Sequence record: ON286972.1
Strand: one strand, 5' to 3'
Length of the DNA stretch: 64,000 nucleotides
The stretch's first letter is position 1. The number at the start of each line of letters is the position of its first letter. Both the position numbers and the translations under genes were made by a program. Below, in pieces: positions 5,531 through 23,986 of the stretch. The notes under the pieces are model-generated. The model had not been told where the DNA came from. It saw only the letters and a list, made by a program, of their open reading frames with translations, and did no database searches.

Positions 5531-5603
5531 CTATGCACCCGGTGGGCTAGAGTCTTTCTCGACTTGATGAAATAATTATAGCAGTACTGGAAAAATAAAG
5601 CAA
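5531..5603 (-). ncRNA. promoter + two-hairpin RCCC-ANN-GGGUGC unit, antisense
   Basis: TTGCTT-17-TATAAT on minus strand, then AGUC/GACU hairpin and CUAGCCCACCGGGUGC. Confidence 0.55.
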
Positions 5604-5636
5604 TACCCTGGATGCAAAAAGTTTTAATTAATTTGC

Positions 5637-5716
5637 TTGCCATCCTGGGGCGTACTATGGTACTATGATTCAGTACTGAGAAAGTGCTTTGACCTGCTAG
5701 GGTGCGGGAGTGTATC
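5637..5716 (+). ncRNA. promoter + two-hairpin GGGUGC unit (variant)
   Basis: TTGCCA-18-TACTAT; AGUACU/AGUGCU hairpin; GACCUGCUAGGGUGCGGGAGUGUAUC. Confidence 0.45.
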
Positions 5717-5741
5717 CTTTTTAAATTTTATGAATTTTGGA

Positions 5742-5818
5742 CGGATCTTCCCACCCCCTGGGGTATCCGCTTTCTCGCGTCTATGTAGTAATTATACGCT
5801 TTTTTAGTACTGAGTCAA
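5742..5818 (-). ncRNA. promoter + two-hairpin unit (variant), antisense
   Basis: TTGACT-16-TATAAT on minus strand; CGC-GAGAAA-GCG; ACCCCAGGGGGU. Confidence 0.45.
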
Positions 5819-6137
5819 TAGCTAAAAACAAAATAATTGAAAATAATTTAACGCGTTTAAACGGCCCGTAAAGCCCTGGATTGGTGGGAGTGGTGCAAAT
5901 GTATAGCTTAGGTGTATTAATGCGTTAGAACGCGATTGAGGCCGTTTTAATGGTATAGTACTGAATAATTGTACTCACTGGATTGATTCAGTACTGAATG
6001 ATAGTACTCCTATATAGAAAGAAAACTATTTTAAAAGTATTTGTAGAAAGTACTTGCATACTATGTTTAACGGCGTATAATGTTTTACATCGAGACGGGG
6101 GAAACGCTCCTAACTCACTTTAATAGGAATTAAAACG

Positions 6138-6500
6138 ATGGCGACTCAAATCACTAAAATCATTGCTAACCTGGTTAACTTTCGCGAAGAGATGAAAGAT
6201 CTTCCGGCTGAGACTGTAAAGATTCATATTTCAGCTTATCGGGAATTGATTGCAATGTTGCCGCTTAAGCGTGAACAATACGCCGCTACTGTGATGCTTG
6301 ATGCGATGATCCACAAGATGATTGCCAGTGATTTAACGATGGCTTATCAGTACATGGGCGAACTATTTGCGGTGTATAGTAAACCAGTGCCTGGGATGGA
6401 AAGTACCGAAGTATTGCACGGCTTAAACTTAAAACAAGATGCATGGGATAATATGCCTCGTTTCCTGGTATGGGCTGACAGTGGCAAGATTTACGAATAA
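6138..6500 (+). CDS. early hypothetical protein
   Basis: Own promoter and SD. Confidence 0.85.
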   Translation: MATQITKIIANLVNFREEMKDLPAETVKIHISAYRELIAMLPLKREQYAATVMLDAMIHKMIASDLTMAYQYMGELFAVYSKPVPGMESTEVLHGLNLKQDAWDNMPRFLVWADSGKIYE

Positions 6501-6594
6501 GTTTTAAAAAGTACTTGCATACTAAGTTTAAAAGCGTATAATACTTTCTATCAGGTGGGGAATAGTTCCCCACTATAATTAAGAGATTAATTTT

Positions 6595-6828
6595 ATGAGT
6601 ACTATCTTAACTGTTTCTCAATCCGTTGCACTGGCTGAATTGATGGAAGCTCTGAGCCGTTGCACTGAGGTTGGCTTGTTTGATGTGGTTGACGTTGCAC
6701 CGGACGTTATTAATCATTTTTGTGATGCAATGGAAGAGTGCAAGGAAGATGATAGCCGTATGATGGCGGCCACCTTTGAGGAAGTACAGCCAGGTGAGAT
6801 CAAAGGTTTACCAGTACTGAAAAAATAG
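6595..6828 (+). CDS. early hypothetical protein (acidic)
   Basis: Own promoter/hairpin cassette. Confidence 0.8.
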   Translation: MSTILTVSQSVALAELMEALSRCTEVGLFDVVDVAPDVINHFCDAMEECKEDDSRMMAATFEEVQPGEIKGLPVLKK

Positions 6829-6914
6829 TACTTGCAAACTAAGTTTAAAAGCGTATAATACTTTACATCGAGGCGGGGGAATGGTTCCCCGCTCAATCAA
6901 ACGAGGATTTAAAA

Positions 6915-7154
6915 ATGGCTAAATCAAAAATGTTCTTAGGTCACAAAAACAAAACTCAATGGAATGTAAGCCTTTGGATTAATAACGATGAATCATTATA
7001 CCGGTTGGCCCAGGACTTTATTGCCGCTAACACTAATCGCAATGATGCGGCCCGTCATATGATGCTATTTTTAGAACAGACTGGACAAGATAAAACGCCG
7101 GACGGATTCAAGTACAGTACTACGGCGATCCGTGCGGCGATGGTTGGAATGTAA
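6915..7154 (+). CDS. early conserved phage protein (WNVSLWINND...TPDG motif)
   Basis: Motif recognised from a widespread phage hypothetical family; SD GAGG. Confidence 0.85.
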   Translation: MAKSKMFLGHKNKTQWNVSLWINNDESLYRLAQDFIAANTNRNDAARHMMLFLEQTGQDKTPDGFKYSTTAIRAAMVGM

Positions 7155-7236
7155 TAGAATAGATTTAAAGTACTATTGCACGGTGATAGTACTTTATAAT
7201 AGGATTTTATTCATACATCAACGATGGGGTAACAGC

Positions 7237-7500
7237 ATGAATATTATATACTTTGCAACGCGTGAACAAGCTCGGATCGCCGCTCGCCAGGACGGGGCAA
7301 CGTTTAAAGATATGGGCGTGCAATCGGAACGTGGTAAACGTTGGGCGGTAGTAAAGCAAAGTACAGCCAGATCCTTACAGTACTGGTTAGCGGCGTTAAA
7401 AAGTCCTGCTAGTGTATCGCGTCGAGTGGTAGAAATAAAGCACGACCGCAAGGGCAACCGTGTTACTGTGTACAGTACTAAAAAGATAGCAGTACTATAA
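7237..7500 (+). CDS. early hypothetical protein, paralog of 19204
   Basis: FATRE.AR...KDMG...RWAV and HDRKGNRVTVYS shared. Confidence 0.8.
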   Translation: MNIIYFATREQARIAARQDGATFKDMGVQSERGKRWAVVKQSTARSLQYWLAALKSPASVSRRVVEIKHDRKGNRVTVYSTKKIAVL

Positions 7501-7589
7501 AAAAAGTACTTGCAAAGTAATTAGATTAATGTATAATACTTTCTATCAGGTGGGGAATACTTCCCCACTACAATGAAGAGGATTTTAAA

Positions 7590-7820
7590 ATGGCTATTAT
7601 GTATATGACCGAAGTTAAAACCGTAAAAGATACTACCACTAATAAAACTACTTACTTACAGCGGGTATGCGGTGTATGGCAACGTATTAGTAAAGCAAAG
7701 TACTATAAATTAACTTCATATGCTAATCGTTCGGATTCATTCAGTACTGAAATAAAAGGTAATAAATTACACCAATACGGCACTTATTATTATTATAGCC
7801 TGGACGCGATTGCAGTCTAA
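7590..7820 (+). CDS. early hypothetical protein
   Basis: Own cassette, SD GAGG. Confidence 0.8.
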   Translation: MAIMYMTEVKTVKDTTTNKTTYLQRVCGVWQRISKAKYYKLTSYANRSDSFSTEIKGNKLHQYGTYYYYSLDAIAV

Positions 7821-7850
7821 GCAGTTTACAAATCTTTACAATTGCCAGTA

Positions 7851-7927
7851 TTGACTTATTTTGTCAGTACTGGCATAATGTATCTATTGAAACGAACAAT
7901 TTGGCCCACGGGGTGCGGGAGTGTATC
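7851..7927 (+). ncRNA. promoter + two-hairpin GGGUGC unit
   Basis: TTGACT-17-CATAAT; AUUG/CAAU hairpin; GGCCCACGGGGUGCGGGAGUGUAUC. Confidence 0.55.
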
Positions 7928-7961
7928 TATAGAAAAAGTAGTTTAGTACAGTTACAATTGT

Positions 7962-8023
7962 GCACCCTATGGGTTAGCTGTTGTCATGGGGTATATTATA
8001 CCAGTACTGGATAGTGCTGTCAA
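7962..8023 (-). ncRNA. promoter + GGGUGC unit, antisense and convergent with 7851
   Basis: TTGACA-17-TATAAT on minus strand; CUAACCCAUAGGGUGC. Confidence 0.55.
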
Positions 8024-8103
8024 TACCTTTTTTTTACTATTCAGTACTGAAAACTATTTTTAAAAAGTACTTGCAAACTATGTTTAAAGGCGTATAATGT
8101 TTT

Positions 8104-8180
8104 ACATCAGGACGGGGAACGAAATAAGTAACTCCCCATTAAGTAGCCCAGGAGTAAGGCACACGAAAAACTCCCCTGAT
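8104..8180 (+). ncRNA. pseudoknotted small RNA, copy 1
   Basis: Between two tandem promoters; GCC/GGC stem, loop GGAG pairs with CUCC; AUCAGG/CCUGAU closing stem. Confidence 0.65.
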
Positions 8181-8248
8181 AAAATAGTTTGAAAATTGTT
8201 TTTAAAAGCGTATAATACTTACATCAACTACTGAATGAGGGTTACAAA

Positions 8249-8860
8249 ATGAAAACTATCACTACTACTACTTTCGTTATGGATTTTTCTGAATTGAACG
8301 CAGAACAAAAAACGTCAGCTATCGAACTGGTTCGGGAACGTGAAAAAAACTCAAACGACAATTATTTTTCTGAAAGTGAAATTGAATACTATAAAGAAAC
8401 AGTACTACCGGAATATGGCATTAATGACGCTGAAATACAATTCAGTGGTTTTTGGTCCCAGGGTGACGGTGCATCAATCAGTACTGACCACGTTGACGCA
8501 GTGAAGTTTTTACGCAAGGTAAGAGCATTAACTAAGTATCGCTCAATCCGTCACCTGCTGAATGAAGATGATTTGGCGATGAGTGTAAAGCGTTCGCACT
8601 CCCACTACTCGCATGAGAATACTGTAAGCGGGTACATTGAATCGGCTTACACTGATTTAACCGCAAAACAAGAAACGTTAGTTAATGAGCTTGAGGAACT
8701 ACTCACTGAAACTATTCGTGAATTATCCCGCAAGTTGTACCGTGATTTAGAGAATGCATATGAGGATCAATTCACTACTGAAAACATTACGGCACTGATT
8801 GAGGGTAACGAATATCAATTCAATGTTATTGATGGCGTAGTAGAATCAATCGAATATTAA
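8249..8860 (+). CDS. early conserved phage protein (FSGFWSQGDG motif), acidic
   Basis: Motif of a widespread phage family; function not assigned. Confidence 0.9.
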   Translation: MKTITTTTFVMDFSELNAEQKTSAIELVREREKNSNDNYFSESEIEYYKETVLPEYGINDAEIQFSGFWSQGDGASISTDHVDAVKFLRKVRALTKYRSIRHLLNEDDLAMSVKRSHSHYSHENTVSGYIESAYTDLTAKQETLVNELEELLTETIRELSRKLYRDLENAYEDQFTTENITALIEGNEYQFNVIDGVVESIEY

Positions 8861-8950
8861 TTTAAAAAGTACTTGCATTGTAGTTAGATTAACGTATAAT
8901 ACTTTACATCGAGGCGGGGAATGGTTCCCGCCTTTACTGAGGGTTATCTA

Positions 8951-9232
8951 ATGAGCAAAGTAATTAACTATACAGTGTTAAGCAAGTCATTGTCTATTAG
9001 CCAATGTACTGATGGTTATTGGCTTTATGATGAAACGCGTGGCATGAATTTAGCTATGCAGGAGAAAACTACTGATGCGGCATATCTTAAAGCACTGGAA
9101 TACTACCAGAAGCGTTTAAAGGAAGTAGAAAACGATTATAATAACCTGAAAGCGAAAGTAGATAATTTCGTTGGTCAATTCGTTGACGATGACGAGGGGC
9201 ACTACTGCGACCGTTGCGGATCTTACAGTTAA
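8951..9232 (+). CDS. early conserved phage protein (DGYWLYDETRGMNL)
   Basis: SD GAGGG; start adjusted from 8921. Confidence 0.85.
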   Translation: MSKVINYTVLSKSLSISQCTDGYWLYDETRGMNLAMQEKTTDAAYLKALEYYQKRLKEVENDYNNLKAKVDNFVGQFVDDDEGHYCDRCGSYS

Positions 9233-9249
9233 GTACTGAGGATTATCTA

Positions 9250-9453
9250 ATGAGTGATTTAATTGAACGTATCAAAGAGCTTGAAGAAAAAGAATTGCAG
9301 TTAATCGGCTTACAGAATAAAATCTATCATGATTTGGGGAGTTTTATCAATGCTTGGGATAGTGGCGATCCTGATGCGTTACCTGCTAACCGCCAGGCGA
9401 TGATCAATGATGTGCGTAGTGTCTTTGAGTATGTTTTAAAGCAATTAAATTAA
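9250..9453 (+). CDS. early hypothetical protein
   Basis: SD GAGG; start adjusted. Confidence 0.8.
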   Translation: MSDLIERIKELEEKELQLIGLQNKIYHDLGSFINAWDSGDPDALPANRQAMINDVRSVFEYVLKQLN

Positions 9454-9541
9454 AAAAAGTACTTGCAATTAGTTTTTAGTACTGTATAATGGTTTACATA
9501 GAGGGGGGGAAATGGTTCTCCCTGGTAATGAGGAAAATACA

Positions 9542-9763
9542 ATGGCTAATATCACTACTCTTTCCCAACTGGAAGCACTGGTTAAATCTATGCGGGAACA
9601 TGCCGACAATATCGGCGTAAAAGATCCAGCCGTTTGCTTCTGCGACGAATTGAATGATGATACCCTGGTAATAGCAGAAGTCCAGGACGTTTCTAACTAT
9701 TCCTCGCGTTACACTGGCGGTGTAGCAAATAAAGGTGACTTCTGTTTATACCTTACAAAATAA
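9542..9763 (+). CDS. early hypothetical protein
   Basis: SD GAGG after leader hairpin. Confidence 0.8.
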   Translation: MANITTLSQLEALVKSMREHADNIGVKDPAVCFCDELNDDTLVIAEVQDVSNYSSRYTGGVANKGDFCLYLTK

Positions 9764-9765
9764 CA

Positions 9766-9798
9766 ACGCGGGGAGATAATAACTCCCCGTTACTTTTT
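9766..9798 (+). terminator. intrinsic terminator
   Basis: GGGGAG/CTCCCC hairpin then T-run. Confidence 0.65.
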
Positions 9799-9817
9799 CA
9801 GTACTGAATCATTTAAT

Positions 9818-9898
9818 AGACGGATCTCGGCACCCGGTGGGTTAGTGACTGTTTCGTCTTGATGTAGTAATTATGCCAGTACTGGATGCACTTGTCAA
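9818..9898 (-). ncRNA. promoter + two-hairpin GGGUGC unit, antisense
   Basis: TTGACA-17-CATAAT on minus strand; GAC-GAAACA-GUC; CUAACCCACCGGGUGC. Confidence 0.55.
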
Positions 9899-10006
9899 CA
9901 ATTATTTTTCAAATACTTTTTATTAAAATACTTGCAATTAGTTTTTAAACGCGTATAATGTTTTGCATAGGGGGAGCGGTTCCCCTGGTAACTAAGGAAT
10001 AAGAAA

Positions 10007-10243
10007 ATGGTCGAACAAATCAAATCAACGTCTTCGAATGTAACGGGAACGGTAGCACACTTTACTAGTGATGAATCGCGGGGCGTTCCCTATTGTGCTG
10101 TACATGTAAACACTGAGGGTAACTACTGGTTTACGGTTTACGGATCATATTCATTTGGACGGCCAGGGCATCAAAAAATTCTGGATAAAGTACAGCCAAC
10201 GGGTAAAAATATCACTGCTGAAATGTTTTATAAAAAATCATAA
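10007..10243 (+). CDS. early hypothetical protein
   Basis: Own cassette, SD AAGGA. Confidence 0.8.
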   Translation: MVEQIKSTSSNVTGTVAHFTSDESRGVPYCAVHVNTEGNYWFTVYGSYSFGRPGHQKILDKVQPTGKNITAEMFYKKS

Positions 10244-10328
10244 AGTACTTGATAATAGTTTTTAGTACTGTATAATATTTTACATCGCAAGGGGGGAGCG
10301 GTTCCCCCTGGTAACTAAGGATAATCAA

Positions 10329-10628
10329 ATGAAAATTGCAATCATCGCCCTGGCTTTATCTGTTTCCTCTTTCGCTGTTAATGCGTCGTTAGATGTAAGT
10401 AGTGAAAAATTCATTCAGTGCACCGTAGCAATGACAGATGAAAGTACTGGCGAGATTGTTTTAAAGGATTTAGAGATCCAGCCAGAAGCATTTAAAAACG
10501 GGCCGTTCCATGAAGAAGACGAAAAAGGTAGCACGACAATTTATTACGATGCAAGTACTAAACGCGGTTCGGTCACTGTTATGGATACTGAGAAAGTAAC
10601 TCATACTGGCGTTATTAATTGCCGTTGA
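10329..10628 (+). CDS. early exported/periplasmic protein
   Basis: Sec signal peptide MKIAIIALALSVSSFAVNA; two Cys. Confidence 0.8.
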   Translation: MKIAIIALALSVSSFAVNASLDVSSEKFIQCTVAMTDESTGEIVLKDLEIQPEAFKNGPFHEEDEKGSTTIYYDASTKRGSVTVMDTEKVTHTGVINCR

Positions 10629-10649
10629 TAGATACTACGGGGTAACATC

Positions 10650-10880
10650 ATGACTAAGCGAATTGTTTTACTTAACGAAAGCAGTACTACACAACTACTT
10701 AACGCCGTGCATTATGATATTGAAACGAGCGTTAATCTTATCAGTACTGTAGTACTGTTGGACACTGGAAAGGTCGCCAATGATAAAGCGATTGCAGGTA
10801 TACTAACGGATCTTGAGCCTGGTAGCAGTGCACCAATAACGTTAAATGGTAAAGTGTTTAACATTTTACTTACTGATTAA
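10650..10880 (+). CDS. early hypothetical protein
   Basis: SD GGGG; followed by terminator. Confidence 0.75.
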   Translation: MTKRIVLLNESSTTQLLNAVHYDIETSVNLISTVVLLDTGKVANDKAIAGILTDLEPGSSAPITLNGKVFNILLTD

Positions 10881-10886
10881 GTACAT

Positions 10887-10909
10887 AGCCCACCTGGTGG
10901 GCTTTTTTG
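10887..10909 (+). terminator. intrinsic terminator
   Basis: AGCCCAC-ctg-GTGGGCT + TTTTT. Confidence 0.8.
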
Positions 10910-10995
10910 TTTTTGTAGTATCGTAGTACTGAGATACTTTGAAAATAGTTTTAAAAAAGTAGTTGACATTACCGCAGAAAAGCGTAGAATGTATT

Positions 10996-11069
10996 ACATC
11001 AAGACGGGGAGCACTAAGTAGACCGCCAGTAAGTCGAACGAAAAACTGGACACGTCGAGAAAACTTTGA
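10996..11069 (+). ncRNA. pseudoknotted RNA, copy 3 (leader of the H-NS-like gene)
   Basis: GAC/GUC stem, loop CCAG pairs with CUGG (compensatory versus copies 1 and 2). Confidence 0.6.
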
Positions 11070-11113
11070 TACACTAATAAACGTAAACTAAACTTTAATT
11101 GAGGATTTATAAA

Positions 11114-11596
11114 ATGGCTAATGTAAAATCATTCATCAAAGCACTGGTAGCAAATGAAACTAACGTAGCGGCAGAGATCCTGGCTGAACTGGATAACGAT
11201 ACCATGAAAGCGGTACGCAATAATTTTAACATCGCTTACAGTACTGCGAAAGAACTACAAGCAAATAAAGCGGCGGCACTTGAAGCTGAGAAGGCAGCAC
11301 GCGAAGCAGAATTGCAGAAAACGATTGAAGATATTAACGCCGCCGTCGCTGGGCTTGATCTGGAAGTAGTTACCGAAATGGCACGTAAAGCCCTGGCAGC
11401 GAAATACGGGGAAGACAAGCCAGAAGTAAAAGCTAAAAAATGGATTCAAGAACGTGTGACGGTTGTACTGGATAATGGCGAGGAATACACTGTACCAGTA
11501 CGCGGTAACTGCATTGCCGTAGTACTGGATGCTATCAAAGAAAGCGGTTTGACCCGTGAGGAATGGATCGAAGCTCATCGCAAAGTTGAAGCATAA
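11114..11596 (+). CDS. H-NS-like nucleoid protein
   Basis: Coiled-coil AAALEAEKAAREAELQ...AGLDLE and C-terminal DNGEEYT...GNCIAVVLDAIKESGLTREEWI align by eye to H-NS [33 protein letters not shown]. Confidence 0.6.
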   Translation: MANVKSFIKALVANETNVAAEILAELDNDTMKAVRNNFNIAYSTAKELQANKAAALEAEKAAREAELQKTIEDINAAVAGLDLEVVTEMARKALAAKYGEDKPEVKAKKWIQERVTVVLDNGEEYTVPVRGNCIAVVLDAIKESGLTREEWIEAHRKVEA

Positions 11597-11617
11597 CAAT
11601 TAAAGTACTGAATCACT

Positions 11618-11645
11618 AGCCCACCTTAAACAGTGGGCTTTTTTG
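11618..11645 (+). terminator. intrinsic terminator
   Basis: AGCCCAC...GTGGGCT + T-run. Confidence 0.8.
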
Positions 11646-11871
11646 TGTCTATAGTATTCCAGTCCACTAGCACCGCCTAGAATCGATTCTAACGCATTAA
11701 ACTGATTATCTGATGTATCGCCCTAGCTGGTGGCGTTAAGGTCGTTAGAACGCGATTGAGGGCGATTAAAGTATTTTATAAAAACTAATAAAAAGTACTT
11801 GCACGATTAAGAGATTAGCGTATAATTAATTACATCAAGGCGAGACACCTTAACTAACTGAGGATATAAAG

Positions 11872-12024
11872 ATGAATACTTATGAACTGGATTGTTTCAC
11901 TTTACAAGTAATGTCAGTATGCAGCAAGAAAGATTGGTCATCAAAGGAATTTAAAGCAGTTATCGCGTGTGCAAAACACGGCAAGACTATCAATGAAACG
12001 GCATCAATCATTGATAAACTTTAA
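11872..12024 (+). CDS. early small protein (50 aa)
   Basis: Own promoter, SD GAGG; translated by hand. Confidence 0.7.
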   Translation: MNTYELDCFTLQVMSVCSKKDWSSKEFKAVIACAKHGKTINETASIIDKL

Positions 12025-12094
12025 AAAATAGTTTGACAATAGTTTTAAGTACTGACATAATACATACATCAACTACTGAATAGGAATCAAAACA

Positions 12095-12322
12095 ATGGCT
12101 ATCGTAATCACTCGCGTAACTGGTACTACTGGCACTGCTTCAACTGTTGCTGTAATTACTAATAAGAAAGGTGCGGAATTACATTTTGCAATGAATACCT
12201 GGGCGGTGAATGAGTTCGGTCAGTGGGCAAGTGTAGAATACATTGAAACCTATCAAGTGCCATCGATTAGCTTAACTGATTTAGGTGTAGAACGTATCCT
12301 TTGCCTGGATGAATTAAATTAA
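12095..12322 (+). CDS. early hypothetical protein
   Basis: Own promoter, SD AGGA. Confidence 0.8.
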   Translation: MAIVITRVTGTTGTASTVAVITNKKGAELHFAMNTWAVNEFGQWASVEYIETYQVPSISLTDLGVERILCLDELN

Positions 12323-12408
12323 AAAAGTACTTGCAAAGTAAATCGGATAAAGTATAATACATTACATCAAGGGGAGAAATGATTCTCCCCACTAAGAGGA
12401 AACTAAAA

Positions 12409-12552: not shown

Positions 12553-12633
12553 AAATATTATCACAGTACTATTGACATAGTTTGATAGTACTGGCATAAT
12601 AGATTTTATCAAGACAACTAAGAGGAAACAAAA

Positions 12634-16643: not shown

Positions 16644-16649
16644 GATTAT

Positions 16650-16679
16650 AGCCCACTGGTTAACGCTGGTGGGCTTTTT
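16650..16679 (+). terminator. intrinsic terminator
   Basis: AGCCCAC...GTGGGCT + TTTT. Confidence 0.75.
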
Positions 16680-17029: not shown

Positions 17030-17115
17030 AAAAGTACTGGACAATAGATTATAGTACTGTATAATAGTTTACATGAAGGGGAGAAATGATTCTCCCCAGT
17101 ACTGAGGAAAGAAAA

Positions 17116-17328
17116 ATGCAAGGTCAACTAATCGTTCGTAAATGGTCTGATACTAACGAAAAACCGTGGGATGTACAATACATCGCCCCCAATGGTGAAT
17201 CCAGATATCAACCTGGCGTAACGCATAGTACTGAGCAATTCGCCGCTGCTCACCGTGAACGCCTGTTACAATCCATGCAGCAAGGCTTCGGTGAAAAATT
17301 CATCCAAGATCATTGGCTGAAAGATTAA
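17116..17328 (+). CDS. early hypothetical protein
   Basis: SD GAGG; start adjusted. Confidence 0.8.
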   Translation: MQGQLIVRKWSDTNEKPWDVQYIAPNGESRYQPGVTHSTEQFAAAHRERLLQSMQQGFGEKFIQDHWLKD

Positions 17329-17415
17329 AAAAGTATTTGACAAAGTATCACAGTACTGTATAATTAATTACATCAAGGGGAGAAGTTTTCTCCCCACCAT
17401 ATAAGGGTAACAGTT

Positions 17416-17505
17416 ATGCACATGAATCCGTTCATAGTAGTAATTGCAATCATTATGGCAGTACAGGCCGTATTAGTTTACTTAAGCAAAGCAGGAGTTA
17501 TCTAA
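17416..17505 (+). CDS. early single-TM peptide (29 aa)
   Basis: MHMNPFIVVIAIIMAVQAVLVYLSKAGVI after own cassette. Confidence 0.55.
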   Translation: MHMNPFIVVIAIIMAVQAVLVYLSKAGVI

Positions 17506-17506
17506 A

Positions 17507-17680
17507 ATGATCCATGTAGAATTGTCAGTACTGAAAGATCTGTTTTATCGGATGGGTACTACTGGCGAATATCCGAAGGGTGATACCGCAAAACTTTTTG
17601 TATCACTCGACTTATGGCAACGCGAACAATTAGTAACGTCCTGGCGTAAAGGTAAAGCCGACAAGGGGGTCGTAGCATGA
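17507..17680 (+). CDS. early small protein (57 aa)
   Basis: SD AGGAG; translated by hand. Confidence 0.65.
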   Translation: MIHVELSVLKDLFYRMGTTGEYPKGDTAKLFVSLDLWQREQLVTSWRKGKADKGVVA

Positions 17681-17826
17681 AAGAATACATTTTCGAAGTT
17701 ACGTTTTTGGGTAAAGGTATGCATCAACTGATACGGTCCAGCGGATACAGTGTTAACCAGGCGTGGAATAACTTAAAACAAATGTACCCGAACGCTATCA
17801 CATATCGCAACCCTCGCGAGGCATAA
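17677..17826 (+). CDS. early small protein (49 aa)
   Basis: ATGA overlap with upstream stop. Confidence 0.65.
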   Translation: MKEYIFEVTFLGKGMHQLIRSSGYSVNQAWNNLKQMYPNAITYRNPREA

Positions 17827-17840
17827 AATAAATTGAAAAA

Positions 17841-17918
17841 AGGGATTGACTCCGGTCAGTCCCTTTGCTATTATATACGCATAGACAAAAACTAGCCCAC
17901 CGGGTGCATAAATGTATC
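17841..17918 (+). ncRNA. hairpin-embedded promoter + GGGUGC unit
   Basis: GGGATTGAC-TCCG-GTCAGTCCC; CUAGCCCACCGGGUGC; no ORF before next promoter. Confidence 0.55.
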
Positions 17919-18007
17919 TATTGTTTGCTGGTGGCCTGTATTGTCTAGTACTGAAAACTATTTTAAAAAAGTACTTGCATTGTACTTAGAATCAAGTATA
18001 ATGTTTT

Positions 18008-18082
18008 ACATCAGGACGGGGAATGAAACAAGTAACCCCGTTAAGTAGTCCAGGAGTAAGACATACGAAAACCTCCCCTGAT
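18008..18082 (+). ncRNA. pseudoknotted small RNA, copy 2
   Basis: Between tandem promoters; ACGGGG/CCCCGU, GUC/GAC, GGAG/CUCC, AUCAGG/CCUGAU. Confidence 0.65.
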
Positions 18083-18150
18083 AAAATAGTTTGACAATAG
18101 AAAGTAAACGAGTATAATACTTACATCAACCACTGATAAGGAAACATAAA

Positions 18151-18426
18151 ATGCGGATTCTACTGACAGCTAACGAAATCGAACAAGTACTGACTACTAA
18201 CCTGCAAGACTGGAAACGTGAAGCAGATATCCAGGCGGTTCAATGGCTTAACGATAAGTTAACGCCGGATGACTTAAGCAAGATTGTAGATCCTCAATTC
18301 TACGAAGATATTCACGACACCGCGTTAAGCGTCGAGGATGTACTTGATAAGCACTACATTGATACTGATTTACAGGTTTACGGTCGTAAAAACTTTATCA
18401 CTATTCACGACATTTACAATACTTAA
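18151..18426 (+). CDS. early hypothetical protein (acidic)
   Basis: SD AAGGA. Confidence 0.85.
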   Translation: MRILLTANEIEQVLTTNLQDWKREADIQAVQWLNDKLTPDDLSKIVDPQFYEDIHDTALSVEDVLDKHYIDTDLQVYGRKNFITIHDIYNT

Positions 18427-18513
18427 GTATTGACAAAGTATCTTAGTACTGTATAATAGTTTACATCAAGGCGGGGAAATGGTTCCCCTCCTAACTAAAA
18501 GAGAGAAATTAAA

Positions 18514-18696
18514 ATGGCTAAGTGCACTATCTGTAAGAAAGAAATCGTATTAGTTCCAAGTGCCCGTGAACGTGCCGCTCGGTTCGGTGGCAAAGCGTCA
18601 GACTATACAAAAATGTTTACTGCCCATGCAGATTGCCAGGTAGCAAAACGTTCACAAGAAAGCGTAGAATTAATGCGTAAACTTTCCAAAAAATAA
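18514..18696 (+). CDS. early Zn-finger-like protein
   Basis: CTIC...H..C; own cassette. Confidence 0.8.
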   Translation: MAKCTICKKEIVLVPSARERAARFGGKASDYTKMFTAHADCQVAKRSQESVELMRKLSKK

Positions 18697-18784
18697 GTAT
18701 TGACAAAGTATCTTAGTACTGTATAATAGTTTACATCGAGTGAGGGGAAACGGTTCCCCTCCTAACAAAGAGAGAGAAATAAAA

Positions 18785-19108
18785 ATGGCTATGATCCTTA
18801 CCCAGAAAGTAGAACTGAAAATTGTAACCTCCTTTGACATTAAAGTTAATCGGTGGACTGATTCACACGGCAATACTTACCACTCTTGCTACGTGTCTGC
18901 TTTGATTGGTGATCGCTGGGAGGATTTAGGACATGAAACCTTTACTTACGGTTACGGCACACAAGGCGAATACACGGGCTTGGAGATCATTAAAGAAACG
19001 GTTATAGGTTTCAACCCGAAAGAAAAAGTTATTCATCAAATAGAAAAAGAGATCAACAAAGAAATAACAGTTCGCTACAACGATGTAAAACGTAAGAAAG
19101 ATATGTAA
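18785..19108 (+). CDS. early conserved phage protein, paralog of 12938
   Basis: RWTDSHGNTY...TYGYG...DVKRKKD. Confidence 0.85.
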   Translation: MAMILTQKVELKIVTSFDIKVNRWTDSHGNTYHSCYVSALIGDRWEDLGHETFTYGYGTQGEYTGLEIIKETVIGFNPKEKVIHQIEKEINKEITVRYNDVKRKKDM

Positions 19109-19203
19109 TAGAATCCATTTAAAGTACTATTTGACATTGCCCAGATAGTACTTTATAATAGACTCTCGCTTGTAGTACTAACTTAACTAATAGGATGTAT
19201 ACC

Positions 19204-19599
19204 ATGATTACTAAATTCTACGCTACCCGTGAAGCTGCCCGTATTGTTGCACGCGAGGAAGGAGCAGCATTTAAAGACATGGGCACGACCGCACCGAAAG
19301 GTCAACGCTGGGCCGTACAGTTCAAAGAAATCTCTGATATTGTGAATTCACCTGAGCCAGTACTGACAGCAGCAGAACAGAAGAAAGCTGATGAACTGTC
19401 AGCAGTACTTAACGCTCAAGATGAATTTATCGCTGGTTCTGATATTAAAGTACAGGTAAATTCGAATGCATGGACTCACGCGGATCACCTGGCTAACCTG
19501 AAGCGTCCAAGTGAACTGATTCGCAACAAACGAGAGATCCGTCATGACCGCAAGGGAAACCGTGTTACCGTATACAGTAAACGCCGCCAGGTTATCTAA
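19204..19599 (+). CDS. early hypothetical protein, paralog of 7237
   Basis: Shared N- and C-terminal motifs with an internal insertion. Confidence 0.85.
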   Translation: MITKFYATREAARIVAREEGAAFKDMGTTAPKGQRWAVQFKEISDIVNSPEPVLTAAEQKKADELSAVLNAQDEFIAGSDIKVQVNSNAWTHADHLANLKRPSELIRNKREIRHDRKGNRVTVYSKRRQVI

Positions 19600-19621
19600 T
19601 AACTTGCAGTACTAACAACAC

Positions 19622-19646
19622 GGCGGGATCAGTTCCCGCCTTTTTT
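19622..19646 (+). terminator. intrinsic terminator
   Basis: GGCGGGA-tcagt-TCCCGCC + TTTTT. Confidence 0.75.
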
Positions 19647-19661
19647 ATAGGATAAACTAAA

Positions 19662-19916
19662 ATGATTAAGGTACAACTATCTAAAGATAATATCTTGCGG
19701 GTACACTATAAAGCCCCACAGAGAATCATCACAAAGGCCGTACAGCTTGCTAATGAGTTTATTAATGGTAATCTATTACCGAGGAAGTTAAGCAACGGAA
19801 AACTGCGTGTAATCGACGTGGACACCAACAACAGAATAGTAATCGAGAATACCGGAAAGATAAACCTATATGAACACCAACAATATAATAAGAAAATAAA
19901 ACTAATATCACGTTGA
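19662..19916 (+). CDS. ParE/RelE-like small toxin-fold protein (tentative)
   Basis: P..I..KAV.....F.....P.KL..G....V....R.....G.......H..YN pattern as recalled for enterobacterial ParE-like proteins. Confidence 0.5.
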   Translation: MIKVQLSKDNILRVHYKAPQRIITKAVQLANEFINGNLLPRKLSNGKLRVIDVDTNNRIVIENTGKINLYEHQQYNKKIKLISR

Positions 19917-19970
19917 CAGTACTCAAATGTTTTAGTACTATGTATCTATACCAACACGGGGAGTAACAAA

Positions 19971-20189
19971 ATGAATTTATCTAAAGTCGAAAAGAAAACT
20001 ATTGATGTAGCTATCCAACATGGTTACACCTTTCGTAATGATTCACATTTTACCAATTTTCAACAAGGCCAACGAACTATTAAAAAACTAATTGACAAAG
20101 GTTTATTAGTTAAAGTAGATAACGGTAACGGCGTGGAGTATCAGCCAACACAAGACGCATTATCTTTAAAGAAATATGCAATTATCTAA
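19971..20189 (+). CDS. early hypothetical protein (possible winged helix)
   Basis: Own promoter; TIKKLIDKGLL. Confidence 0.75.
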   Translation: MNLSKVEKKTIDVAIQHGYTFRNDSHFTNFQQGQRTIKKLIDKGLLVKVDNGNGVEYQPTQDALSLKKYAII

Positions 20190-20254
20190 TTGACAGTACT
20201 CAAATGTTTTAGTACTATATGTACATACCAACACGGAATAACTGGAGAAACAAA

Positions 20255-20482
20255 ATGATTAATATCTTAGAACGCATCAAAGAAACTACTACGCTGGTGG
20301 ATCTACTCAATGTACTGACTTTTAAAGTAACTCGGTTTAGTACTCCTGAATTTATCAACCTCATTGATAGTAAAGGTGAATACCGCATCACTATTGAAAA
20401 TGGTCGTGCTAATGTATTCAGTACTAAATCAGGTAAAACCGCAATTCATTCAGTAATTGCAAATAAAACTGTTGCAATCTAA
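20255..20482 (+). CDS. early hypothetical protein
   Basis: SD GGAG; start adjusted. Confidence 0.8.
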   Translation: MINILERIKETTTLVDLLNVLTFKVTRFSTPEFINLIDSKGEYRITIENGRANVFSTKSGKTAIHSVIANKTVAI

Positions 20483-20551
20483 TTAGTACTAACATATAAT
20501 AGTCACATCAAGGCAGGGAATACCTCCCTGCTATCTTAAAGAGTAAATGCA

Positions 20552-21136
20552 ATGCGTAATTATACTAAATTCATCCGTACACTGGGAGAAATGGAAACTA
20601 ACAAAGAGATCCTTACAGCTTGTCGGTTGGCTGGTCTGGAGATCATCGGGGCCGGATCATCCCGTATCGTATTCGCTTTAAATGATCGGTTAGTGATTAA
20701 GGTCGCTAATTGTGACGCTGGCGTAGAACAAAATGAAACAGAATGTAAGGTATGGAATTTTTTAGATTATGACCGCCCTCACCTTAAACAGTACTTTGCA
20801 AAGGTGCATATGCATTTATGCGATCCTGATAATATGTTTATCGTTATGGATCGGTTGAGTACTGCAAGTAAAGGCAGTGTAAAGCACGTAAACGCGTGCA
20901 ATGAATTAAAGTACAATATTAAACGTAATGCCATTGAACGCCAGCACCGCTTTGCTGATGCACTACAACACGTTGATGATACATTATCAACACTAACGAT
21001 AAGAGATATCAGAAAACAGAATATCGGCCAGGATCGTAATGGCCTTATTAAAGTACTTGATTACGGTTTAACCCGCAATATCTGGAATCAGTACTATAAA
21101 AAGCGTGATGTAGAAGCAAGTAAGGTAACACGATAA
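20552..21136 (+). CDS. minimal Ser/Thr-type protein kinase
   Basis: GAGSSRIVF P-loop, VIKV catalytic Lys, EQNETE helix C, RDIRKQN (DxxxxN), DYG. Confidence 0.85.
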   Translation: MRNYTKFIRTLGEMETNKEILTACRLAGLEIIGAGSSRIVFALNDRLVIKVANCDAGVEQNETECKVWNFLDYDRPHLKQYFAKVHMHLCDPDNMFIVMDRLSTASKGSVKHVNACNELKYNIKRNAIERQHRFADALQHVDDTLSTLTIRDIRKQNIGQDRNGLIKVLDYGLTRNIWNQYYKKRDVEASKVTR

Positions 21137-21149
21137 AAAAGATTAAAAA

Positions 21150-21233
21150 AGGGATTGACTCCGGTCAGTCCCTTTGCTATTATATATTCATTGAGAGATA
21201 ACTCACTGACCCATAGGGTGCGGAAGTGTATCT
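21150..21233 (+). ncRNA. hairpin-embedded promoter + two-hairpin GGGUGC unit
   Basis: Same hairpin promoter as 17841; GACCCAUAGGGUGCGGAAGUGUAUC. Confidence 0.55.
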
Positions 21234-21359
21234 ATTATATAAGTATTCAGTACTGAAAACTATTTGATAAAAAGTACTTGCATTGTACTTAGAATCAAGT
21301 ATAATGTTTTATATCGAGAGGGGGAAATGGTTCTCCCTGGTACATTAAGGAATAAAATC

Positions 21360-21581
21360 ATGACTACAATGACTTGCATTCACGCTTCAAACCTGCTTAA
21401 TGATGCGGCCTTTAATGTTGATTCAGAATATCAATGTTATCGGGATGAAAATAAAAAAGTTTTTGTAGTTGATAATAATGGTTTCCATATTGAATTACAA
21501 TCCGGTTTCACTGGTGTTGATGGTAAATCAGTGTGGGGCGTACAGGATGATAAAGGCACATATCATTTTAAACGTAATTAA
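21360..21581 (+). CDS. early hypothetical protein
   Basis: SD AAGGA; start adjusted. Confidence 0.8.
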   Translation: MTTMTCIHASNLLNDAAFNVDSEYQCYRDENKKVFVVDNNGFHIELQSGFTGVDGKSVWGVQDDKGTYHFKRN

Positions 21582-21667
21582 GTATTGACAAAGTATATCA
21601 TCAGTACTGTATAATAGTTTACATCAAGGGGAGAATAGTTCTCCCCAATACAATAAGGAATAAAATC

Positions 21668-22075
21668 ATGTCTACTACTACTAATCTCGCTCGGAACATC
21701 ACTAACGATAAAAATCATGCTGCAATGGTTGTAGCTTACATTGAAGCTATGCAATTCAGTACTGTACATAATGATAACGGCGATTACCTGGAAGATTATG
21801 AGTTATCTGATGAAGCACGTCAAGCGGCGGTGATTGCATGTTCTCGCTTCATTGAGAAACACGGTAATGATCTGGAAGTAGTTCGCGGTATGTTTATTGA
21901 TTACGGTTATGAGCAAGCTGGTCATGATCTGTTCCTTACCCGCGAAGGTCACGGAACTGGTTTTTGGGATCGTGGTTTAGGTCACTATGGCGATGTATTC
22001 ACGAAGTACTGCGAAGAAATCAACGTTTGCGATCCCTATGTAGGCGATGATAACTTAATCTATATGGGCGAATAA
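21668..22075 (+). CDS. early conserved phage protein (AGHDLFLTREGHGTGFWDR)
   Basis: Motif of a widespread phage family. Confidence 0.9.
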   Translation: MSTTTNLARNITNDKNHAAMVVAYIEAMQFSTVHNDNGDYLEDYELSDEARQAAVIACSRFIEKHGNDLEVVRGMFIDYGYEQAGHDLFLTREGHGTGFWDRGLGHYGDVFTKYCEEINVCDPYVGDDNLIYMGE

Positions 22076-22164
22076 AAGTATTTGACAAAGTATATCAGTA
22101 CTGTATAATAGTTTACATCAAGGGGAGAATAGTTCTCCCCACACCAATAAAAGGAAACAAAATT

Positions 22165-22437
22165 ATGTCCAGCTACTCCGCTACTATGATCATTAAAGAT
22201 ATGAACGGTAATCCTACTTCTGCTGGTGGATCATTTGGAAACATTAATTTAGATGGTCGGTTATCCATGCAATCAGCCATCGATGCAGCGAAAGAAGTTT
22301 TTAAGAATGAATGTACTGTTAGTAAGCTGGATTATATGGGATTCGCTATCGAGAAAACTAATCGTTTTGTGAACTACAAAAATCCACTGATGATTGATAC
22401 TAACCTGAAAGCTAACGAAGTGGGGTACTTATTATGA
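22165..22437 (+). CDS. early hypothetical protein (LDGRLS motif)
   Basis: Own cassette. Confidence 0.85.
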   Translation: MSSYSATMIIKDMNGNPTSAGGSFGNINLDGRLSMQSAIDAAKEVFKNECTVSKLDYMGFAIEKTNRFVNYKNPLMIDTNLKANEVGYLL

Positions 22438-22625
22438 CAGTAGAAGAAGTTAAAAAAGTACTGGCAGTACTACGCTATCATAATCATTGCAAGGTGAAGA
22501 ATGATCCTGATTATGTTGATTCATCCCTGGAGGAAGACACATTAAACGCAATAAGCCATATGCAAACATTAGCAAAGCGTATGACCGAAAAGAATAGACC
22601 GGACTATATCGGAAATAAAATTTAA
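22434..22625 (+). CDS. early hypothetical protein
   Basis: ATGA overlap. Confidence 0.75.
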   Translation: MTVEEVKKVLAVLRYHNHCKVKNDPDYVDSSLEEDTLNAISHMQTLAKRMTEKNRPDYIGNKI

Positions 22626-22711
22626 AAAGTACTTGCATTGTAGTTAGATTAACGTATAATGTTTTACATAGAGCGGGGGAATAGTTCTCCCGCCAGTCCA
22701 GGAGATACACC

Positions 22712-22975
22712 ATGAACACTATCGAAATCACTATCAATGCACACGTATACGACAACGTAGCACTGCAAACTACTATGACCGCTAATGATACCAGTACTTT
22801 GCGGAATACTGTTATTAGTGCCGTATGTGCTGCAATCGGTGATGTCGCCCTGGAAAATGCAAAACACGTAAACGATGGTTTCACTATGTGCAAACGTGAT
22901 AACGCAAAACATATCATCGTGGAAGGTTACGGCGGTGTAGAATTTAATGTTTATATGAAAAAAGTACTTGCATAA
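22712..22975 (+). CDS. early hypothetical protein
   Basis: SD AGGAG. Confidence 0.8.
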   Translation: MNTIEITINAHVYDNVALQTTMTANDTSTLRNTVISAVCAAIGDVALENAKHVNDGFTMCKRDNAKHIIVEGYGGVEFNVYMKKVLA

Positions 22976-23042
22976 TAACTAAAACAAAGTATAATGTTTT
23001 GCATAGGGGGAGATATCCTCCCCCACTAAAAGGAGTAATAAA

Positions 23043-23267
23043 ATGGCTAACTTTGATGAACTGATGCGGGAAGTAGCTAACCTGGCAGAAGAGAAGAAAT
23101 CATTCGATTCTATCTATAACACCGCTCACCGTGATTCAGTACTGGCATGTAACCAGGATCAAAAAGATGAACTAATCGCCACCTATCATGAAGCATGGAA
23201 GTACTACCGACAATGGGAGAAAGAAGAAAGAGAGTCTACCATTGACGGCCTCAATAATCTAATCTAA
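23043..23267 (+). CDS. early hypothetical protein
   Basis: SD AGGAG. Confidence 0.8.
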   Translation: MANFDELMREVANLAEEKKSFDSIYNTAHRDSVLACNQDQKDELIATYHEAWKYYRQWEKEERESTIDGLNNLI

Positions 23268-23343
23268 AAGTTTTATTTCAGTACTATTGACATAGCTTGA
23301 TAGTACTGATGTAATAACTTTACTAACTACAAGGGGAAACATA

Positions 23344-23601
23344 ATGGATCAATTCACACAATATCGGGTAAATCCTCAAGCTATGGCCTACGTAGAAGAC
23401 CATAAAACGTTACCAGTACTGCAACCAGTTAAAGGCCATATCTATCGTGCAATGTCGTGGAGTGCGGCCCAGGATGGCTATAAAACCGTAGCCGTGGGTA
23501 TGTATTGCGGTAATGGTGAATGGTTTGATCCAAATAATCCGGTAGCCATTGACAGTACTGAAAAAATGAAATGGGCCGACTACATCGAAGATATTTCATA
23601 A
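23344..23601 (+). CDS. early hypothetical protein
   Basis: SD AGGGG. Confidence 0.8.
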   Translation: MDQFTQYRVNPQAMAYVEDHKTLPVLQPVKGHIYRAMSWSAAQDGYKTVAVGMYCGNGEWFDPNNPVAIDSTEKMKWADYIEDIS

Positions 23602-23691
23602 AAACTATTTGACAGTACTACAAGATAATGTATAATGTTTTACATAGAGCGGGGGAATAGTTCTCCCGCCAATAGTTTGGAGTTAAACATT

Positions 23692-23892
23692 ATGTCTATC
23701 GCTATCGCCCTGGTTGAAGTACTGAAAGAAGCTAAAGCCAACCTTATCGATGTACAGATTAAGGAATTGCAAAACGGCTTAATCGGCTGTACTTGTACCG
23801 CTGGTGGAGCGGCAGACTATCGAGAACACGAATCACTCGAATCACTGGTTCGGTATCTTACCATGATCGTTGATGATTGGAGAATCATCTAA
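23692..23892 (+). CDS. early hypothetical protein
   Basis: SD GGAG; start adjusted. Confidence 0.8.
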   Translation: MSIAIALVEVLKEAKANLIDVQIKELQNGLIGCTCTAGGAADYREHESLESLVRYLTMIVDDWRII

Positions 23893-23908
23893 CAAAAAAG
23901 AATAAAAA

Positions 23909-23986
23909 AGGGATTGACTCCGGTCAGTCCCTTTGCTATTATATACGCATAGACAAAAACTAGCCCACAGGGTGCATAGGTGTATC
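23909..23986 (+). ncRNA. hairpin-embedded promoter + GGGUGC unit
   Basis: Near-identical to 17841; CUAGCCCACAGGGUGCAUAGGUGUAUC. Confidence 0.55.

Follow-up and report, generated by a model that had tools for sequence, protein, structure and literature searches.

A repeated, promoter-linked RNA motif in the inferred terminal repeat of Escherichia phage A4

Here we show that Escherichia phage A4 (ON286972.1), a 355.5-kb Rak2-like jumbo phage, carries about ten copies of a strong host-type promoter followed by the same element, predicted from comparative evidence to be a folded RNA of roughly 50 bases. The copies lie in the inferred direct terminal repeat (DTR) of about 21 kb, and the element is shared by related giant phages. 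It matches no described RNA family, and no paper describing it was found. Any function is inferred from sequence alone. The analysis started from a window comprising bases 1-64000 of the A4 genome, for which a first-pass annotation had reported ten promoter-driven copies of a two-hairpin motif, six sense and four antisense. That observation was confirmed.

In the window, CCCAYNGGGTGC occurred 8 times against 0.24 expected, and 0 of 100 shuffles reached 8. The first-pass coordinates start 2 nt earlier and agree with ours. Two further copies reported there are real but degenerate, and of these a covariance model of the element found only -5761. In the rest of the genome the only other site was a palindromic, terminator-like one. 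Every copy in the window follows a sigma70-like promoter, TTGACA/TTGACT (TTGCTT at -5546), a 16-18 nt spacer and then TATAAT/TATTAT/CATAAT. The -10 box ends 21-28 nt before CCC, which equals the 19-26 nt given earlier. The upstream hairpin, described earlier as usually present, is clear in 6 of the 10 copies, whereas the other four are a short form with at most a 3-bp stem or none. The features are listed in Table 1.

Table 1. Coordinates of the inferred terminal repeat and of the units in the 64,000-nt window. Units are named by strand and by the position of the first C of the motif.
Positions	Strand	Feature	Promoter	Upstream hairpin	Core	Downstream box	Model match	Context
4407..25390	.	Inferred DTR						Contains all units; both boundaries approximate
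5520..5603	-	Unit -5546	TTGCTT-17-TATAAT	AGUC/GACU	CCCACCGGGUGC	ACGCCC	45.2 bits	Points toward the left terminus and the 8-nt repeat array
5637..5720	+	Degenerate unit +5693		AGUACU/AGUGCU	CCTGCTAGGGTGC	GGGUGC-N6-GUAUCC, then a run of U	Not found at E<=0.01	Terminator-like site at 5699-5718; convergent with -5761
5737..5818	-	Degenerate unit -5761	TTGACT-16-TATAAT	CGC/GCG	CCCCAGGGGGTGG (CCCC-AG-GGGG variant)		21.5 bits, E 0.003	Convergent with +5693
7851..7931	+	Unit +7905	TTGACT-17-CATAAT	AUUG/CAAU	CCCACGGGGUGC	GUAUCU		Convergent with -7973; 45-nt gap between the motifs
7947..8023	-	Unit -7973, short form	TTGACA-17-TATAAT (12 of 12 matches)		CCCAUAGGGUGC	GUAACU		Convergent with +7905
9815..9898	-	Unit -9841	TTGACA-17-CATAAT	GAC/GUC	CCCACCGGGUGC	CCGUCU		Followed at 9768-9790 by the bidirectional terminator of gene A4_271
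15080..15161	+	Unit +15135		UGAG/CUCA	CCCACAGGGUGC		58.3 bits	-35 box held in a terminator-like stem-loop; 5' leader of annotated gene A4_288 (ATG at 15190)
17846..17922	+	Unit +17896, short form						-35 box inside a 12-bp terminator-like stem; Chi site at 17927
21155..21236	+	Unit +21210		UGAG/CUCA	CCCAUAGGGUGC	GUAUCU	67.7 bits (best match)	
23914..23990	+	Unit +23964, short form						Chi site at 24022

The earlier statement that nine copies have no ORF downstream is too strong for the plus strand. Besides the leader of A4_288, units +17896, +21210 and +23964 run into the next gene's own promoter 68-92 nt further on, with no convincing terminator between; the only candidate found by our scan (dG -7.9) overlaps the next promoter. 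The four minus-strand copies do run against all annotated genes, as had been claimed.

The DTR of A4 was mapped from phage fEgEco12, which has a 20,993-bp DTR confirmed by PhageTerm and restriction digests (PMC13070987). Base 54 of fEgEco12 aligned to window position 4467 and base 20865 to 25263. All copies in A4 fall inside this interval. fEgEco12 has 9 copies in each of its two confirmed repeat copies and 1 elsewhere. 121Q, RaK2, GAP32 and CBB each have one cluster of the same kind, spanning 17-20 kb in 121Q, RaK2 and GAP32, and in the CBB-sized contig the same units occur twice. The covariance model found 93 copies in 21 loci. The 12-mer is the same across phages of E. coli, Klebsiella, Cronobacter, Pectobacterium and Yersinia. 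Of 90 copies, 88 have a promoter scoring at least 9 of 12, and 80 score at least 10, as compared to 2.4% of random positions scoring 10 or more. The orientation relative to the promoter is the same in all 88, and the distance from the -10 box to CCC falls in two classes, 20-22 nt and 25-30 nt.

Comparison of the copies supported a role at the RNA level. All 4 pairs of the upstream hairpin change on both sides; one pair, for example, is CG 25, GC 23, AU 19 and UA 4, with 0 unpaired. No shuffle of 500 reached the observed score. Although these counts come from an alignment fitted to the model, more than 12 different stems were seen independently of the model. The CCC/GGG hairpin keeps its stem while its loop varies between 3 and 4 nt, and two variants read CCU...AGG. 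The GGGUG segment can instead pair with a downstream SYRUCY box. This GGGUGC/box pairing was 88.8% paired, against 34-66% when the partner was slid; box position 19 is 100% pyrimidine, position 20 is 100% purine, and variation in the box is compatible with G.U pairs. Single-sequence folding energies were unremarkable (z from +0.6 to -2.0), so the structure rests on comparison only. Conservation stops at about RNA position +50, about 27 nt after the motif starts, and what follows varies: a terminator, the next promoter, a gene or a facing unit. The restriction to the terminal repeat, the alternative GGGUG/box pairing and this end of conservation, which constrain function most, had been missed in the first-pass annotation.

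The element does not appear to belong to a described family. No Rfam 15 family matched the 64-kb window at gathering scores, and at E<=5 the region 4400-25400 gave only two unrelated weak hits, Trp_leader and IS009, neither at a unit. A search of the whole HK022 genome, which carries the put sites, with the unit model and filters off found no similarity to putL/putR; the best hit had E 0.31 at 20548-20571, not near PL or PR. The units are not intrinsic terminators, since only the degenerate +5693 copy has its GGGUGC-N6-GUAUCC followed by UUUUU, and in the family the bases after the box are AUA-rich, not U-rich. A terminator about 70-80 nt after the motif was seen for some copies, such as the RaK2 minus-strand units and -9841 of the window, while others run into a promoter, a gene or a facing unit.

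We propose that the units are a previously undescribed family of RNA elements about 50 nt long, made by the host sigma70 RNA polymerase from dedicated near-consensus promoters. In this view, each RNA would start at the A of a conserved CAU and usually form a 3-5 bp 5' hairpin with an A-rich 6-7 nt loop. A YUAR spacer would follow, and then an invariant small hairpin, (A/G)CCC, a 3-4 nt loop and GGGU, whose G strand can instead pair with the SYRUCY box across an RGARNU loop. The units exist only in the roughly 21-kb direct terminal repeat of Rak2-like jumbo phages, at 8-11 copies per repeat and in both orientations. The 5' domain would itself be the product, an immediate-early, multi-copy RNA that needs no translation and acts in trans by binding a very conserved partner, either host core machinery or a host defence or RNA-binding protein, and what lies 3' of it would not matter. 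The end of conservation, the varied downstream sequences and the sameness of the 12-mer across hosts are consistent with this. The sequence family, its promoter linkage, the RNA-type covariation and the restriction to the terminal repeat are established by our analysis, whereas transcription of the units, action in trans and the existence of a partner are inferences. We are confident that this is a real RNA-level family, but the decoy or binder mechanism remains tentative (probability about 0.35). There is no transcript evidence, the only public runs being assembled contigs, probably DNA, from relatives. A trans-acting RNA would usually have a defined 3' end, and only some copies have a nearby terminator. 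No partner or target was found, and E. coli K-12 has only the 4 copies of the 12-mer expected by chance. Moreover, the spacing every 2-3 kb, the bias toward minus-strand copies on the left and plus-strand copies on the right, and the exact 45-nt gap of the convergent pairs across genera all look positional, which fits a role in cis or on DNA better than a need for RNA dosage.

The first-pass interpretation was supported in part. Its core inference of promoter-linked elements acting at the RNA level is borne out by the compensatory changes, the G.U-compatible box and the fixed orientation and position relative to the promoter, but none of the four functions it listed without choosing (put/boxB-like nascent RNA, R-loop primers, RNA polymerase traps and decoy sRNAs) could be confirmed. 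A put-like element, which would stay bound to the polymerase that made it and change pausing or termination so that transcription crosses the many terminators of the repeat in both directions, is the strongest alternative but still unlikely. The element lies within the first 50 nt or so of the predicted transcript, it has two small hairpins, any cargo would do as downstream sequence is not conserved, and the 12-mer is invariant across hosts whose RNA polymerase is nearly identical. Positions G7, G8, U17 and G18 fit the elemental pause consensus G-11 G-10 ... Y-1 G+1, and plus-strand units sit directly after strong terminator-like stems. However, besides the negative search of HK022, minus-strand units have no sense cargo, genes downstream of plus-strand units have their own consensus promoters, and facing pairs of terminator-proof polymerases would simply collide. 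Promoter-proximal pause or roadblock units, or insulators, in which parked or colliding polymerases isolate neighbouring gene cassettes and the short RNA is a by-product, are less likely still. In their favour, convergent pairs with the fixed gap recur in several genera, only 10 strong minus-strand promoters exist in the whole genome and 4 of them are the units, a small hairpin lies about 10 nt upstream of the conserved U17/G18, and plus-strand units combine a terminator and a promoter. But ordinary hairpin terminators are available and are used elsewhere in the repeat, and this idea does not explain the covarying 5' hairpin or the invariant 12-mer in single, unpaired units.

It is also doubtful that the units are transcription-primed sites serving replication, duplication or processing of the repeat, as R-loop primers or origins (as at T4 oriF/oriG or ColE1 RNA II) or like the ORF-less promoters near the ends of T7. 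Their restriction to the terminal repeat, ORF-less nature (overstated for plus-strand copies, as above) and occurrence in both orientations, with minus-strand copies in the left part and plus-strand copies to the right in Asteriusvirus, would fit, a G-rich segment is followed by an AT-rich stretch, unit -5546 points at an array of 13 copies of an 8-nt repeat and at the left terminus, convergent pairs flank a 21-nt AT-rich centre at a conserved spacing, and relatives have a T4-type replisome (PMC5259590). On the other hand, eight to eleven origins in 20 kb is excessive, the promoters are of the early sigma70 type, all intergenic DNA here is AT-rich, GC skew follows gene direction and marks no origin, and nothing in our analysis shows an R-loop. 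A more novel form of this idea, also unlikely but not excluded, is a bistable nascent RNA specific to the terminal repeat, which switches between the CCC/GGG and GGGUG/box hairpins and lets host RNA polymerase act on DNA rather than make a message; through R-loop priming, or polymerase anchoring in both directions, it would replicate, duplicate or protect the 21-kb repeat of a 350-kb linear genome. Least likely is a double-stranded DNA site, either an operator or a -35-like box of a nested phage-specific promoter, or a mere PeSL-like recombination linker whose 5' hairpin is the generic stabiliser seen on all early transcripts. CCC-N3-GGG is a dyad, the consensus after the box reads TATAAT at the right distance for a -10 box if the 12-mer were at -35, the promoter parts look like PeSL cassettes of T4-type phages (PMC2839356), and relatives differ by cassette-sized deletions ending in the repeated promoter regions. 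Against this, 42 of 89 copies have no TAnnnT at that place, the variable loop and the CCU...AGG variants keep the pairing, G.U pairs matter only in RNA, the orientation is fixed, and recombination would not keep 12 nt invariant while the flanks diverge.

Long terminal repeats of jumbo phages are probably the first DNA expressed after injection, yet almost nothing in them has a known function. The element marks the repeat across several genera and gives a concrete handle on it, with a 12-nt core that can be mutated, an RNA that can be pulled down and promoters that can be tested in vitro with ordinary E. coli polymerase. If it is a decoy, it would be an anti-host weapon that needs no translation; if it acts on polymerase or primes DNA synthesis, it would show how these phages handle a 21-kb repeat. 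With about 90 diverse copies and good covariation, it is a clean candidate for a new RNA family.

Among known systems, HK022 putL/putR are likewise nascent RNA elements with two stem-loops, transcribed by host RNA polymerase, for which no protein factor has to be assumed, but they are about 70 nt rather than about 50 nt and occur twice rather than 8-11 times, whereas the units run in both orientations and often have no downstream genes. Lambdoid nut sites also have a small hairpin with a purine-rich loop close to an early promoter, and the lambda boxB stem uses CCC/GGG; by inspection only, the unit loops are 6-7 nt rather than 5 nt, there is no boxA-like sequence, and no N-like protein is known in these phages. 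R-loop or primer transcripts and the T7 end promoters share with the predicted transcripts of the units promoter-driven transcription without a coding role, placed where DNA replication or end processing happens, but nothing here shows an R-loop or a primer function, and the copy number is far higher. Multi-copy sibling sRNAs and viral decoy RNAs (Qrr, LhrC; RNA anti-CRISPRs; adenovirus VA RNA) similarly involve several paralogous small RNAs with an invariant core and variable flanks, each with its own promoter, while the units have no defined common 3' end and no identified target or partner, are dispersed in a terminal repeat, and some face each other. The related jumbo phage PA5oct has two ORF-less regions, ncRNA001 and ncRNA002, inside its long terminal repeat, which RNA-seq shows to be highly transcribed throughout infection (PMC7318152). 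These are 236 and 451 nt long, single-copy and without a recognised promoter, and PA5oct has no copy of the motif. PeSL cassettes (PMC2839356, PMC4122927) are repeated consensus sigma70 promoters with an adjacent or overlapping terminator-like stem-loop, lying in plastic early regions full of small ORFans. They have no conserved transcribed 12-mer and precede ORFs. The four plus-strand units on the right (+15135, +17896, +21210 and +23964) resemble them in that a 12-bp stem contains the -35 box, a stem-loop that the other six A4 units lack. Contigs of relatives skip 7496-8061 and other cassettes, the ends of these cassette-sized deletions lying, short of exact crossover points, in the repeated promoter regions.

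Escherichia phage A4 (ON286972.1) is a 355,528-bp linear genome of the genus Asteriusvirus, isolated on E. coli LF82, and the window is its first 64 kb. All annotated genes from position 6138 onward in the window are short hypothetical proteins on the plus strand. We first checked the ten places at which the first-pass annotation had reported a promoter-linked motif, and the observation held. CCCAYNGGGTGC was present 8 times in the window against 0.24 expected, and no shuffle reached 8. In the whole A4 genome, the only other site, with one mismatch, was GCACCCTTTGGGTGC, a perfect palindrome that is the only near-match to the 12-mer of the motif outside the terminal repeat and is probably an ordinary terminator stem. 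When the ten places were lined up, a near-consensus sigma70 promoter was found before each one, with the -10 box ending 21-28 nt before CCC. Two copies, +5693 and -5761 (units are named here by strand and motif position), were degenerate. Six copies showed a clear upstream hairpin with different complementary stems, whereas the other four were a short form in which only an A-rich stretch remains.

A pattern scan of IMG/VR returned many chance hits in unrelated contigs, but also dozens of copies with the same promoter and hairpin context in contigs of 345-378 kb, which are assigned by inference to 121Q (348,532 bp), GAP32 (358,663 bp), CBB with its repeat (378,379 bp), fHe-Yen9-04 (354,378 bp) and RaK2 (345,809 bp). 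A covariance model built from 14 gapless copies found 93 copies in 21 loci. In the window, the model recovered 9 of the 10 units and nothing outside 5.5-24 kb.

All four modelled pairs of the 5' hairpin change on both sides; one pair, for example, is CG 25, GC 23, AU 19 and UA 4, with none unpaired. The covariation score was 0.45, as compared to 0.22 in shuffles (0 of 500 reached the observed score) and 0.06-0.09 when the partner was slid. Although that alignment was fitted to the model, a model-free scan had already shown more than a dozen different stems. The stem of the CCC/GGG hairpin is invariant, while its loop varies in sequence and between 3 and 4 nt, and two divergent copies read CCU...AGG. 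The G strand of this hairpin can instead pair with a box six bases downstream. GGGUGC with SYRUCY was 88.8% paired, against 34-66% when slid, and box position 19 is always a pyrimidine and position 20 always a purine, facing G and U. Such G.U-compatible variation matters only in RNA. The two pairings exclude each other, and predicted energies favour CCC/GGG in most copies. Thermodynamic analysis gave no support, since single-sequence stability was ordinary (z from +0.6 to -2.0). A long-range helix between the RNA 5' end or hairpin loop and the box appeared in several minimum-energy folds, but was rejected for want of comparative support, as the energies of own and swapped partners did not differ (-3.39 against -3.23 kcal/mol, p 0.88). 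Information content drops to background about 27 nt after the start of the motif, which is near RNA position +50, the transcription start being predicted from promoter geometry only.

Of 90 copies with the GGGTG core, 88 have a promoter scoring at least 9 of 12 and 80 score at least 10, whereas only 2.4% of random positions in the same loci score 10 or more. The -35 box is TTGACA or TTGACT in 77 copies, and the spacer is mostly 17 nt. In the whole A4 genome only 10 minus-strand sites score at least 11 of 12, and four of those are the minus-strand units. Another ORF-less promoter scoring 11 of 12 (TTGACT-16-TATAAT), with a CAU start but no unit motif, lies in the gene-free left end of the inferred terminal repeat. 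A second leader family marks the ORF-bearing early genes, wherein TATAAT and a CAU start are followed by a hairpin with a G-run, a loop close to AAAUGGUU and a C-run, and then by the Shine-Dalgarno site. With a strict pattern, 12 of 13 genome-wide hits of this second family lie in the terminal repeat. In addition, AGTACT occurs 922 times in the A4 genome against about 120 expected from base composition, with a density of 6.7 per kb in the terminal repeat and 2.3 per kb elsewhere. It often appears as CAGTACTG, overlapping the -35 box of early promoters or lying about 20 nt upstream of it, and may be a factor-binding site.

The main new fact is the location of the units. fEgEco12, another Asteriusvirus, has 20,993-bp direct terminal repeats confirmed by PhageTerm and restriction digests (PMC13070987). 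Its base 54 aligns with window position 4467 and its base 20865 with 25263, thereby placing the A4 repeat approximately as listed in the table, and all ten units fall inside that range. In fEgEco12 the motif occurs 9 times in each repeat copy and once elsewhere, while 121Q, RaK2 and GAP32 each hold a single 17-20 kb cluster and nothing outside it. In the contig assigned to CBB the same units appear twice, which fits its reported 22,456-bp repeat (PMC5259590). The two tandem repeats in the gene-free left end of the inferred A4 repeat lie about 150-950 nt from the inferred terminus, and unit -5546 points at the 8-nt array.

Positions of the units and of other features in phage A4 (window coordinates unless stated otherwise)
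Feature	Position	Strand	Detail
Block of small genes	1-4139	+	negative GC skew (-0.15)
Stretch without annotated gene	4139-6138		
Inferred direct terminal repeat	about 4407-25390		
Tandem repeat	4554-4604		2.2 copies of a 23-nt unit
ORF-less promoter without unit motif	4801-4828	+	
Tandem repeat	5244-5350		13.4 copies of an 8-nt unit (CTAGACGG)
Unit	5546	-	
Unit	5693	+	degenerate
Unit	5761	-	degenerate
Unit	7905	+	
Unit	7973	-	
Unit	9841	-	
Unit	15135	+	
Unit	17896	+	
Unit	21210	+	
Unit	23964	+	
Second leader family	6854-24500		12 sites, e.g. 6854, 9485, 14078, 18452, 24500; one more at genome position 272733
Chi sites in the window	11726, 16665, 16934, 17927, 20293, 22222, 23800, 24022		
AGTACT	whole genome		densest in window 1-20000
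Cassettes skipped in contigs of related phages	6577-6911, 7156-8913, 7496-8061, 9195-9454		
Gene A4_316	25480-26298	+	272 aa
Palindromic site	genome 110135-110149		outside the window

The sequences following the units differ. Unit +15135 leads straight into gene A4_288, whereas +17896, +21210 and +23964 are followed by the next gene's own promoter with no convincing terminator, the single weak candidate overlapping the next promoter. Unit -9841 is followed by the bidirectional terminator of the upstream gene, and the RaK2 minus-strand units have terminators about 70 nt after the motif. Two pairs, 5693/5761 and 7905/7973, face each other, and the same face-to-face arrangement, with exactly 45 nt between the motifs, recurs in 121Q, CBB, GAP32 and several metagenomic relatives. 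The four right-hand plus-strand units carry their -35 box inside a 12-bp terminator-like stem, which resembles the PeSL cassettes of T4-type phages. Contigs of related phages skip whole gene cassettes, with end points in the repeated promoter or leader regions, and one skipped cassette contains the 7905/7973 pair. This fits PeSL-like modular shuffling.

Searches for a described counterpart gave nothing. No Rfam family matched at gathering or permissive thresholds, no tRNA or tmRNA was found, no homology to put was detected, and the motif was absent from PA5oct, whose terminal-repeat ncRNAs are the nearest experimental precedent. In the literature searched on Asteriusvirus, RaK2, CBB and Sharanji, no paper mentions the motif. 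Resemblances to CRISPR repeats, type III antitoxin RNAs, the preQ1 aptamer, RfaH ops and CsrA sites were considered on general grounds only, and were dropped as they did not fit the consensus. A nested promoter with the 12-mer as a -35 box was rejected as a general feature, since 42 of 89 copies lack any TAnnnT. A three-codon mini-ORF (AUG/GUG UAU CUA stop) was also rejected, because a start codon is present in only some copies and GGAG lies directly against it. When a base-pairing target in E. coli was sought with the full-length 12-mer, the 12-mer or its complement was found 4 times in K-12, which is the chance level. Neighbouring proteins all belong to PHROG families of unknown function. 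Public sequencing runs yielded only assembled contigs of relatives, probably DNA, with no starts, ends or strand. The units are described here from sequence alone, as phage-encoded, promoter-proximal structured RNAs or multi-copy small RNAs having no homologue among described families.

The data support a real RNA-level family with high confidence. The interpretation offered in the first-pass annotation, that these are RNA elements with one of several proposed functions, was partly supported. The sequence family, its linkage to promoters, the covariation and the restriction to the repeat come from the comparison itself, whereas transcription of the units, their action and any partner are inferred. 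We tentatively favour the reading that the 5' domain of about 50 nt is itself the product and acts in trans on a very conserved partner. This would account at once for the strong dedicated promoters, the 5' position with a stabilising hairpin, the indifference to orientation and to what lies downstream, the copy number, the location in what is probably the earliest-expressed DNA, and a 12-mer that never changes across phages of five host genera while the flanks drift. In this view, facing pairs and shared terminators would simply keep ORF-less cassettes from reading into their neighbours. However, the regular spacing, the orientation bias in Asteriusvirus, the exact geometry of the pairs and the strict restriction to the repeat speak against it, as these look positional. 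They keep alive a put-like modifier acting in cis, R-loop priming or other DNA work on the repeat, and pause or insulator units, while a purely DNA-level reading is least likely.

GC skew was checked as an origin marker but was found to follow gene direction. The block of small plus-strand genes at the left end of the window has negative skew, unlike the plus-strand genes after 6 kb (+0.1), and the switch lies next to the inferred left terminus. Chi sites are strongly biased by strand and place. In the whole A4 genome, GCTGGTGG occurs 21 times on the plus strand and 2 times on the minus strand, against about 1.3 expected per strand, and eight of them lie in the terminal repeat (0.38 per kb, against 0.04 per kb elsewhere). 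Two sit just after units, and in other genera Chi lies in the promoter spacer of units. Near the right boundary of the terminal repeat, where the alignment with fEgEco12 breaks, gene A4_316 matches an endonuclease PHROG (phrog_681, E 3e-10) and may be an inserted mobile endonuclease gene.
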